Source of the DNA: Octopus bimaculoides
Taxonomy: Eukaryota
DNA: 64,000 nt
Direction: 5' to 3'
Assembly (NCBI RefSeq): GCF_001194135.2
Contig: NC_068985.1
Span: 19,676,382-19,740,381, forward strand
The notes under the pieces were generated by a model. The model had not been told where the DNA came from. It was given only the letters and a program-made list of their open reading frames with translations, and did no database searches. Shown here in pieces: positions 47,601 to 53,272 of the stretch. The position numbers and the translations under genes were made by a program. How positions within the stretch are numbered: the stretch's first letter is position 1; the number at the start of each line of letters is the position of its first letter.

Positions 47601-50600
47601 AGATTTCTTGGCATAAGTGCACCATCCTGACATGGTGCACTTATGTCAGGATGATTGATTTTCACAGGTTTGTTAGATTTCATATGAAATAGCACATTTC
47701 TCATGTGATGTTCTTTTAATGTTATTAGGTGCAGAGATTTGCATTGCTACACCAGGGCGTCTTATAGACTTCTTAGAAGCTGGTAAAACAAATCTTAGGA
47801 GAACTACATATTTAGTTATGGATGAAGCTGATAGAATGTTGGATATGGGCTTTGAACCACAAATTAGAAAGATTATGGAGCAGGTTCGGGTAAGTAATTA
47901 AAGTTTTTTGTCATTACTGAAAATATTTGACTTGGTCTTGTGTCTTGAGTTTTAGTTTACAAACTTTTTATTATTTTCCTTTTCTAGCCCGACCGCCAAG
48001 TGCTTATGTGGAGTGCTACTTGGCCAAAAGAAGTGAGATCATTAGCTGAGGAATTCCTTAAGGACTACATTCAGATCAACATAGGTGCTCTGCAACTTAG
48101 TGCGAACCACAATATTTTACAAATAATTGATGTTTGTAATGAATCTGAGAAAGATCACAAGTGAGTATTATTTCAGCTGCAATAGTTTTGAATGTTTTTT
48201 TTTTTTTTTATGTATACGTATGTGTAAGCATGTATTCAAATGTTTTAAATTCTATTAATTGTAGATTAGTAAAGCTTCTAGAAGAGATAATGAATGAAAA
48301 AGAAAACAAAACATTAGTTTTTGTTGAGACTAAACGGAGAGCAGATGAGTTACAAAGAAGAATGAAGCGTGATGGGTAAGTTACATTTATGCATGAATAC
48401 TGCCATATTGTTATACTCAGGTTGATATATTTGCTTTAGGAAGCTGTATTTTATTTGATTTGTTTTCTAGGTAATAAAAAATGTTATGGGAATATAATAG
48501 TATATGGATTTTGTTCTGTATTTCCTAGTTTGAAAATGTTAGGCTTTTTGGAGGATGGGAGCACAAAGTTCAGATTTTTTTTTTGCTGTTTTGTCTCTAG
48601 ACTGAGCATTTAGCTCTGCCTACACCACTTCAATGAACCAAAACTGATGATGGTTGATATCTTTAAAAAAAAATTTTTTTATAATTCCAATAAATCACCC
48701 CATTATTGCTGGTTTGATGAAATGAGAAATATTTTATCACAATGTTTTCTTCTGAAATAATGATTTGGATGTTTAAAACTTGATTAACCTTTAGTCTCCT
48801 GATCAAATTTCTATGAAAAGCTGTTGGTACATTTGTATTAGACTGACTACTTGGTATTAATAGAAAGGTTAATCTTTTTTGTATGGGTTGTTTTTGAATT
48901 TGACAAATCTGTGTGTTAAATACACATCAGTGTGGTGAGGGCTTTTCACTTTCCTAATAGTTCTTAGTGCAGATAGGTGTGGTGTTTGCACTTACTCAAA
49001 GCTATGAAATAGTAACCGTATTACATCTACATGCATTTGTTAAACTATTTTTTCAATCATTTTCCTTCAGCTGGCCTGTTATGGCTATTCATGGTGATAA
49101 GTCACAACCAGAGAGAGATTGGGTGTTAAGTGGTGAGTAACAATTCTGCTTTTGATTTTAACTTTGATGACATCATTTTCGCAATTCAGCACTATTAAGT
49201 GCAACTGTCAGATTTGAAGATTACCCATTTATCTTTTCCTTTTACAGAATTCAGAACAGGGCGTATACCAATTATGATTGCTACTGATGTTGCATCTAGA
49301 GGCTTAGGTTTGTATAAAACTGAAGAAAGGTCTTCACACTTTTCTTTTATTAATTACATACTTTTAAATGTTGAATTTGTAATAACTCATAACTTAAATT
49401 TCAAACTCTCTCCAGAGTCTCATTAAGAAATGTTAAAACTGAAATTAATTTCATTTAAAGTACATTTAAATTTGAATTCATAAACATTCTTTAAAGAGTA
49501 AATATGAAATGATTGCATTGGTTACAGTACATAACTTGTAATGTTTGAGTACGTGTGTGTGCATGTGAGAGTGAATGATAAACAACTGCTTTGGTTGTTA
49601 ACTCTTCTGCTTTATGTCGCAGTAATAAGTTCTAAGTCTCTTTTGGCAGCGGAACATAGAAAGTTACTGATGCAGGCTGGACCGGCATGACTACTCTCAA
49701 GAGCTGAGGGGAAGGTGCAGAAATTTTCCTCTTCAGTTGTTGACATCCAGAAAGTAATAAATTTGATGATTCTTAGTGCTGAGTTCCCCCGACCTGGCGT
49801 GAGGAATTCAGGTGGTGATATTGGAGAACAAGTTCCAGTTTCAAGACTTGACCTGCACAAGCAGCAGACCTGTCTTGGACAGTTAAATGGCACTGGCTTT
49901 CCTTTCTTTCAACTTCATCTTATTTTTGCTTCACCCCCTTTTTTCCTCTTTTTTTTTCTTTTTTTTTTTTTTAACCAGAATTTTCTGGGTTAATGCCTTT
50001 TTATTTGATAAACACTTTTCTTTTTCTTTTTTTTTTTTTGCCCCCATTTCACAAGTTCAATAAAAATGTAGTGGCAATAAAATAGTATGCATTACTGGCA
50101 CTGACCTGGATCTAGGATTTTCTCACACAAATCTGGTAAGGTATAGTACTGAGTGTTGCTATTCTGTCTGGAAACACCTAAGATTGAAACTGCTGGGTAT
50201 TGGTATAAACTGATGCTGTTTGCTTTTCAGTGAGTAATAAACAATGGAGAAGTGTTAAAGGTGAATGTGTGTGTGTATGTAAATATAACTTTTGACATAT
50301 TGTTTGTGCTATGTTTAATCAAGGTTTGAGTCCTTGTTAACCTTTCTTGTGTTTTCCTAGAGTTTAACTGCTTTTTAAGTTGATGTAAAAGTACATACAA
50401 ATCATATTTTGTCAACTTGTAATTTTCAAGAAGTTATAGTATATTGATTTAAGGGCTATTAAAGTGTTTCCATGTTTAAACCTGTTAAAGCAGCTATAGA
50501 TTGTCCATAGTGAATTAATCCTCTAAGTTACATGAGATTACCTTAAAAATTTTTTAGTTATTTTGTAGCAAACTAAGTCCTATTATTGGTTCTTTCATCT

Positions 50601-53272: not shown

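Follow-up and report, generated by a model that had tools for sequence, protein, structure and literature searches.

Intron 11 of the DDX5 gene carries two complementary box pairs, here called H1 and H2, and a hairpin next to the 3' splice site, H3; they are described from a window of 64,000 nucleotides (nt) of Octopus bimaculoides (the whole stretch of DNA that was analysed, from contig NC_068985.1). All octopus features mentioned below lie on the forward strand of this window. The invariant boxes of H1 are GGCAUGAC and GUCAUGUC; they are mutually complementary, lie 0.4-1.8 kb apart and are part of a longer segmented duplex. As judged from the comparison of orthologous sequences, H1 is one helix of a conserved set in intron 11 of DDX5/DDX17, and it is at least as old as the bilaterian ancestor. 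This makes it a rare case of an intronic RNA structure conserved from mollusc to vertebrate. We think it probable, without holding it for certain, that the helices of intron 11 form a switch by which DDX5/DDX17 limits its own production through splicing feedback.

The gene in the window is O. bimaculoides DDX5 with 13 coding exons, and the assembled product is 100% identical to DDX5 isoform X1 of this species across 746 residues. Intron 11 (49308-51672, 2365 nt) was read directly from the sequence with the boundaries TAG/GTTTGT ... TTTTACAG/AT (a slash marks a splice junction). It is flanked upstream by exon 11 (49247-49307) and downstream by exon 12 (51673-51911), which encodes ...ARGIFGK, and it interrupts helicase motif V, splitting the codon right after ..ATDVASRGL. 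An earlier, sequence-only reading of this DNA had assigned a possible long-range duplex to intron 11 of DDX5, and the intron is indeed the 11th. Orthologous loci were gathered via protein searches, the criterion being an intron at the identical position. When the flanking exons were placed with tblastn the intron site (the ..ARGL/D.. codon of motif V) was identical in the window and in nine other loci: those of a second octopus (Logan run SRR11869390, L001), the cuttlefish Acanthosepion pharaonis (L088), the scallop Ylistrum balloti (L090), the hemichordate Ptychodera flava (L089), the amphioxus Branchiostoma belcheri (L003) and B. lanceolatum (L007) and, for the vertebrates, DDX5 of the bichir Erpetoichthys (L004) and of bullfrog (L005) and DDX17 of Arapaima (L006).

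The H1 5' core in octopus is CCGGCATGACT (49682-49692), which includes GCAUG and has the invariant GGCATGAC at 49684-49691. The 3' core AGTCATGTCGG (51003-51013), with the invariant GTCATGTC at 51004-51011, is its complement, and the core helix consists of 10 Watson-Crick pairs and one G·U (G49685·T51010) which is kept. The four coordinates and the pair count given in the sequence-only reading were exact. Further out GCAGG (49672-49676) pairs with CCTGC (51017-51021) in an outer flanking helix whose sequence varies by lineage while the pairing partner is retained; CCTGC is followed by CAG (to 51024), and CCTGCCAG looks like a 3' splice site. Inside the cores there is an inner helix between the purine-rich strand GAGGGGAAGG (49706-49715) and the pyrimidine-rich, polypyrimidine-tract-like strand ..CTCCTATCTCTCCCTTGTC (50960-50988), and every lineage has a GAGGGG-type run in the former and a TCCCTC-type run in the latter. 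The extended 5' arm (49626-49749) lies within a block (49602-49847) with 88% identity to cuttlefish and, relative to the second octopus, 0.8 differences per 100 nt; the extended 3' arm (50934-51071) is its top partner in the whole intron (RNAduplex -74 to -76 kcal/mol). Within the loop closed by H1 there is also a block conserved in cephalopods only (50126-50179, 84% identity to cuttlefish) with the 5'-splice-site-like CTG/GTAAGG.

Each H1 core box occurs once in the window. It should be noted that the helix is not significant when taken alone, as the sequence-only reading had cautioned: intron 11 has 9 stems of 11 bp or more which contain no more than one G·U, compared to 7.5±2.5 in 200 dinucleotide shuffles, and a repeat finder does not rank the H1 stem among the 25 longest inverted repeats. 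The case for H1 therefore depends on the comparison across species.

In this comparison GGCATGAC followed by GTCATGTC(G) is found in all 10 of the 10 orthologous introns, colinear and 379-1795 nt apart. Bichir DDX5 has GGCATGAC at 5349 and GTCATGTCG(..)CCTGCCA at 5855-5873, in the expected order, frog DDX5 has both cores (at 6262 and 6683), and Arapaima DDX17 has them at 6525 and 7477 with a single change (GTCATGTCT, in which T replaces the last G). From base composition the chance of finding both boxes colinear is approximately 1e-4 per intron and the joint chance across five independent lineages approximately 3e-18. A blastn comparison of the octopus and amphioxus introns gives the two H1 arms as its two top hits, and between the two octopuses the conserved blocks have 0.8-2.3 differences per 100 nt against 10-14 in the rest of the intron, a sign of recent selection. 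As both boxes are present in molluscs, hemichordate, amphioxus and vertebrate DDX5 and DDX17, H1 predates the split between protostomes and deuterostomes; their presence in both DDX5 and DDX17 likewise implies that H1 is older than the vertebrate duplication which gave rise to these two genes.

The sequence-only reading had proposed conservation of the duplex from molluscs to vertebrates on the basis of three motifs attributed to human DDX5 intron 11. The conservation is supported by the ten introns with their conserved order of cores, and in the vertebrates the cores are neither missing nor out of order, in DDX5 as well as in DDX17. The two core motifs are indeed colinear in bichir and frog DDX5, in Arapaima DDX17 and in five invertebrate lineages. 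The third motif, TTGGGGACAGG (51379-51389), is conserved among cephalopods only and is located in an internal helix of the H2 domain described below; bichir has TTGGGACAAG just 5' of box E4 of H2, and in one amphioxus a copy is out of order.

The beetle Brassicogethes has two tandem DDX5-like copies in one gene model (L091 3038-3331 and 6842-8937), and the intron is absent from the first copy and retained in the second. At this locus GGCATGAC is kept, but it is found only in a local hairpin with GTCATGC 48 nt downstream, which probably represents H1 in a reduced form. Neither core box is present in the 1.0-1.7 kb of upstream sequence available from each of two contigs, probably of insects (L008 and L009), which have an intron at the site; the contigs come from a metagenome scan with the exon 12 peptide which otherwise gave mostly bacterial DEAD-box genes. 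A locus of the shark Scyliorhinus torazame (protein P0010) was dropped from the comparison, being an intronless DDX5-like open reading frame of 153 residues (L002 10001-10462) which is probably a processed retrocopy.

That the H1 boxes pair was analyzed in several ways. RNAalifold on an alignment of nine sequences recovers the core helix with the same eight pairs, the G·U among them, in 9/9. The sequence-only reading would have been contradicted by uncompensated substitutions in the arms; there are none in the 8-bp core, and the positions adjacent to it change in a compensatory manner. Beside the core, one pair occurs as U-A in four sequences and as A-U in two, another as C-G in five, A-U in one and U·G in one, and double-sided changes are seen at five pairs of H1. 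In the alignment 88.9% of the cells are paired, compared to 37-54% after a shift of the partner strand by 1-3 columns. The covariation score of H1 is 0.188 against 0.141 in shuffles, and 18 of 500 shuffles reach it; the flanking pairs covary modestly, and the cores contribute nothing. The signal is modest because the core pairs never vary. With flanks of about 140 nt RNAduplex predicts for each species a duplex in segments, at -75 to -98 kcal/mol, and in 9 of 10 species no part of the intron is a better partner for the 5' arm than the real 3' arm (z = -2.3 to -4.6); only the frog departs from this. The outer flanking helix is made of different sequences, GCAGG with CCTGC in octopus, GCGGGAGG with CCTCCTGC in amphioxus, AGCTG with CAGCT in scallop, TGGCAGG with CCTGCCA in bichir and GGC-CTGG with CCAGCC in frog. 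These strands fit their own partner (mean -19.6 kcal/mol) better than the partner of another species (-15.4 kcal/mol), and 67 of 20000 permutations were as good.

The second duplex, H2, emerged from the comparison of the orthologous introns. Its first box E3, ATGCATGCTCCC (51319-51330), forms 12 bp, two of them G·U, with box E4, GGGAGTGTGCAT (51514-51525), and the conserved box pair is AUGCAUGCUCCC with GGGAGUGUGCAU. The pair is also present in cuttlefish, scallop, hemichordate, both amphioxus and bichir, and E3 is the top intron-wide partner of E4 in all seven species tested. Here 95.6% of the cells are paired compared to at most 67% when one strand is slid; a shuffle control is uninformative for H2 because its columns hardly vary. 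Folding of the octopus H2 domain (51305-51540) gave z = -5.3, which 0 of 200 shuffled sequences matched. For H2 the frog intron has just a diverged hairpin around GGTAAG, as judged by eye, and neither H2 nor H3 was found in the Arapaima intron, the sole DDX17 intron examined.

H3 is a hairpin located 8 nt 5' of the authentic AG, at 51628-51664 (within the stretch 51615-51673), where TTGTTATGGGG (51628-51638) pairs with CCCTGTAACAA (51654-51664). Its RNAalifold consensus has 11 pairs in molluscs, hemichordate, amphioxus and vertebrates, and two of these are compensated (A-U to G-C and U-A to G-C). In vertebrates this hairpin corresponds to a known microRNA family. Rfam mir-3064 (RF03840) matches the terminal 66 nt of the bichir intron with 69.8 bits (E = 1.5e-14) and the frog intron, in which H3 is present, with 48.7 bits, both below the gathering threshold of 76 bits; the covariance-model scan of the octopus window gave no match to mir-3064 at E <= 10. 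Judged by alignment and by the RNAalifold consensus, the octopus H3 is homologous to the vertebrate mir-3064 hairpin. Human miR-3064 is located in DDX5 intron 11, which is 1236 nt long (PMC4807562); the bichir intron is 1244 nt. As the mir-3064 hairpin ends the bichir and frog introns, and human miR-3064 is found in DDX5 intron 11, the introns compared here are orthologous to the human intron 11. The age of H3 suggests that the microRNA annotation describes a by-product of a splicing hairpin. A G·U pair is conserved in all three helices and would be a C·A mismatch on the opposite strand, which places the structures in the sense RNA.

All three helices have splice-site-like sequences within or beside them. 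The authentic 5' splice site is weak and unchanged (TAG/GTTTGT) in octopus, scallop, hemichordate and amphioxus, and the authentic AG is nearly without an adjacent pyrimidine tract, which is poor in all species. A branch-point-like CTACTAAT followed by a pyrimidine tract is found at 51605-51629, 5' of H3, a layout repeated in other species; H3 thus separates branch point and pyrimidine tract from the authentic AG. The 3' arm of H1 has itself the appearance of a 3' splice site, with a pyrimidine tract, the core and then CCTGCCAG, and it carries CCUGCCAG; pyrimidine tract and AG are found in this arm in all species, with the position and quality of the AG variable. Reading from exon 11 into intron 11 soon meets a stop codon, and exon 11 joined in frame to position 51025 onward meets TAA after about 30 codons (by eye). 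The loop of H2 has a cluster of 5'-splice-site-like motifs (51363-51465), CAG/GTGAAT (51366), CAG/GTAAGA (51413), AAG/GTAAGT (51433) and AGG/GTAAGC (51461), and in the best of these, AAG/GTAAGT, the GGTAAG (51432-37) is predicted to pair with the U1-like CTTACC (51450-55). Three GTAAG motifs occur within 53 nt (51413-51465). In octopus, cuttlefish, scallop and both amphioxus, motifs which match at 8 or 9 of 9 positions are concentrated within the H2 loop or immediately 3' of it; hemichordate and bichir have weaker matches (7 and 6 of 9) located 5-7 nt after the first H2 box. By our own estimate about 0.05 such strong sites are expected per intron.

Human DDX5 intron 11 is retained at 8-12% (PMC8668116). 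In cephalopods the indication of retention is indirect: an RNA-seq contig of cuttlefish or a close relative (P0339) encodes a product reading through into intron 11. Two contigs of the cuttlefish cluster in Logan (P0341 and P0342) have unspliced or alternative sequence after exons 1 and 2, so incompletely spliced DDX5 RNA seems to be common in those assemblies. The short 'X2' isoforms of teleost DDX5 were considered as products of a poison exon and rejected, as their divergence starts in the following intron. These isoforms (P0144, P0159, P0177, P0223, P0240, P0213 and P0178) have a conserved alternative C-terminus, ..GGKSNWSFKGR.RW*, which in clupeiforms is ..SNWSRPGRQRWA*.

The switch which we favour would work as follows. 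The folded helices would mask the internal decoy or poison splice sites and draw the authentic AG near to the distant branch point, with H3 placing the upstream branch point and its pyrimidine tract close to the AG, and the weak intron 11 would be removed productively. At high DDX5/DDX17 activity the helices would be opened, and splicing would shift to retention of the intron or to a stop-containing exon with less functional mRNA as the outcome. Intron 11 would in this way be a sensor of the helicase's own activity and mediate negative feedback. The helices consist of segments of 5-13 bp, a length within the range opened by DEAD-box proteins (bioRxiv 10.64898/2026.01.23.701338), and human DDX5 acts as a repressor of both itself and DDX17 (PMC3763533). 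A more far-reaching version holds that the sensor is ancestral, i.e., that helices unchanged since before the split between protostomes and deuterostomes convert DDX5/DDX17 unwinding into a choice between productive and unproductive splicing; this we put forward as a tentative proposal which falls somewhat short of being probable.

Several observations are at variance with the switch. The auto-repression by human DDX5 is reported to need ATP binding, and not helicase activity or ATP hydrolysis (PMC3763533). Opening of H3 could also aid access to the branch point, which would oppose negative feedback. The use of the internal splice sites is a prediction made from the DNA sequence, and the AG near the 3' arm of H1 is not fixed in position and is a poor GAG in bichir and frog. 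The evidence for pairing has its own weak points. The H1 cores are invariant and hence give no covariation signal, and an invariance beyond what a helix needs suggests an extra constraint, such as a bound protein or alternative pairings. The changes in H2 are all one-sided via wobble (e.g., a G-to-A in scallop which turns U·G into U-A), with no double-sided pair. In the inner purine/pyrimidine helix of H1 there is no species-specific matching of the strands (8476 of 20000 permutations were as good), and co-evolution is therefore not claimed for it; this helix may be conserved for its sequence, e.g., as protein-binding sites.

Four other explanations have to be weighed against the switch. The helices could be a fixed aid to splicing which folds a long, weak intron, loops out its variable middle, masks cryptic sites and brings the AG near to the branch point, all without modulation by the helicase. 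The structural evidence for H1-H3 applies equally to such an aid, the weak 5' splice site and the poor pyrimidine tract at the AG in all species are what it would serve, and regulation is not seen in any data of this analysis. A fixed aid does not explain why the intron is retained and regulated in yeasts and human, why so elaborate an arrangement has been kept specifically in the gene of an RNA-unwinding enzyme, and why plants have independently come to use structure for feedback in the same gene family, and we consider it rather unlikely. Less likely again is that the boxes are mainly protein-binding sites, (U)GCAUG for RBFOX in LASR, a complex with DDX5/DDX17 among its members, the pyrimidine runs for PTB and the G-runs for hnRNP H/F, with the pairing secondary or controlling access to them. 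DDX5 is said, from work by Damianov et al. in 2016, to be a subunit of LASR. Protein sites would account for cores which have been invariant for more than 500 million years, beyond the requirement of a helix, and for purine and pyrimidine strands which are interchangeable across species; GCAUG, a candidate RBFOX site, is present in the H1 5' core of all species, and UGCAUG in E3 of molluscs and hemichordate. However, E3 of amphioxus and bichir is without GCAUG and its pairing to E4 is still kept, the 3' cores (GUCAUGUC and GUGUGCAU) are not known motifs and yet are equally invariant and exactly complementary, and the positions adjoining the core covary.

The duplex might also be a double-stranded RNA substrate of ADAR, either as the complement of an editing site or as an ADAR-binding site affecting splicing. 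Cephalopods edit their RNA heavily, and the segmented duplex has long arms of about 120 nt each. A splicing event of Ddx5 is altered in Adar-null and editing-dead mice, at a site which is not specified (PMC7462079). The duplex is nevertheless equally conserved in taxa with little recoding editing, and short, interrupted helices are poor ADAR substrates, which makes this explanation very improbable. Finally, the complementarity could be a coincidence, and the blocks DNA elements or unrelated small-RNA genes, a view to which we give hardly any credence. The H1 helix alone is at chance level, as described above, and the 3'-terminal hairpin is annotated as a microRNA in vertebrates. Against this stand two independent box pairs which are both complementary (by chance approximately (6/16)^8 for H1 and (6/16)^12 for H2), G·U pairs which are strand-specific and changes beside the cores which are compensated; moreover, no Rfam family covers H1 or H2.

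The position of the DDX5/Dbp2 intron has been known to be shared from yeast to human since 1991 and autoregulation in yeast since 1995, while the animal element was undefined. In Saccharomyces cerevisiae the intron of DBP2 occupies this position, and relief of its retention is seen in a helicase-dead mutant according to the account of Barta and Iggo (1995) given in PMC4695336 (Kilchert 2015); the intron at this position mediates negative regulation in both yeasts (PMC4695336). Yeast DBP2 and S. pombe dbp2 share with the animal genes the gene family and the intron position; the yeast intron is uncommonly long, is poorly spliced and lowers helicase expression (PMC4695336). They differ in that no defined RNA helices are reported for the yeast introns in the literature found, and the S. 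pombe element consists of Mmi1-binding TNAAAC motifs (PMC4695336).

The plant DEAD motif of DRH1/RH46 acts in the manner proposed here and is an intronic RNA structure in the gene of a DDX5 homologue. It is a hairpin which masks an alternative 3' splice site, and its function needs helicase activity (Burgardt et al., bioRxiv 10.64898/2026.01.23.701338); unwinding by the encoded helicase leads to stop-containing variants and thereby to negative feedback (bioRxiv 10.64898/2026.01.23.701338). The plant motif is, however, a single local hairpin with a stem of 19-20 bp and a loop of 3-5 nt, found in land plants only and unrelated in sequence. The animal element has long-range duplexes (loops of 0.4-1.8 kb) and two more helices, and its function is a prediction. 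It does not fit the plant type of a single hairpin, as H1 has loops of 379-1795 nt and is built of segments of 5-11 bp.

The human DDX5 intron 11 is reportedly a conserved retained intron hosting miR-3064 and miR-5047, a description attributed to Moore et al. in 2011. It is orthologous to the octopus intron, its retention is documented, and it has at its 3' end the mir-3064 hairpin to which the octopus H3 is homologous. The published reading is that of a microRNA host, the sole function so far proposed for the human intron; the octopus hairpin is below any Rfam threshold. The docking and selector sites of Dscam and the ATE1 and PCCR classes resemble the DDX5 element in having conserved complementary boxes hundreds to thousands of nt apart near alternative splice sites. 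The presence of complementary boxes in orthologous introns (10/10 for H1, 7/7 species tested for H2) is a feature which it shares with these long-range structures. The known cases select among alternative exons and are mostly conserved within insects or within vertebrates, whereas the DDX5 intron spans protostomes and deuterostomes and its host gene encodes an enzyme which could unwind the pairing.

The position of the intron, its retention, the autoregulation in yeast, the microRNA annotated in vertebrates and the hairpin of plants were all known before. Searches of full-text literature gave no account of long-range H1/H2 duplexes in animals or of the invertebrate conservation; a partial earlier description in vertebrates is possible. 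The analysis names specific nucleotides, i.e., two complementary box pairs and a hairpin at the 3' splice site, which can be tested directly by mutation. The mechanism setting the level of DDX5/DDX17 is of general interest, as splicing events in their thousands depend on these helicases and cancers over-express them. If the switch and its ancestry hold, few intronic RNA structures known from animals would be conserved as deeply as H1 and H2. Seen alongside the DBP2 intron of yeast and the DEAD hairpin of plants, self-sensing through RNA structure would then be an ancient trait of this helicase family, perhaps one found throughout the eukaryotes.

Some minor observations were made on the loci. 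The intron which follows in octopus DDX5 has a weak match to an H/ACA small nucleolar RNA (51943-52064; SNORA31, 25.6 bits with a threshold of 40, E = 0.12), and a downstream intron of frog DDX5 matches SNORA21 (L005 8577-8710; 75.3 bits with a threshold of 80). The window has runs of N, i.e., assembly gaps, at about 43.59 kb and at 59.6-60.5 kb. A gene with an RNase PH domain is located head-to-head just 5' of DDX5, on the minus strand, in cuttlefish (L088 1-920) and scallop (L090 1-155), which suggests that this gene order is conserved between the two.

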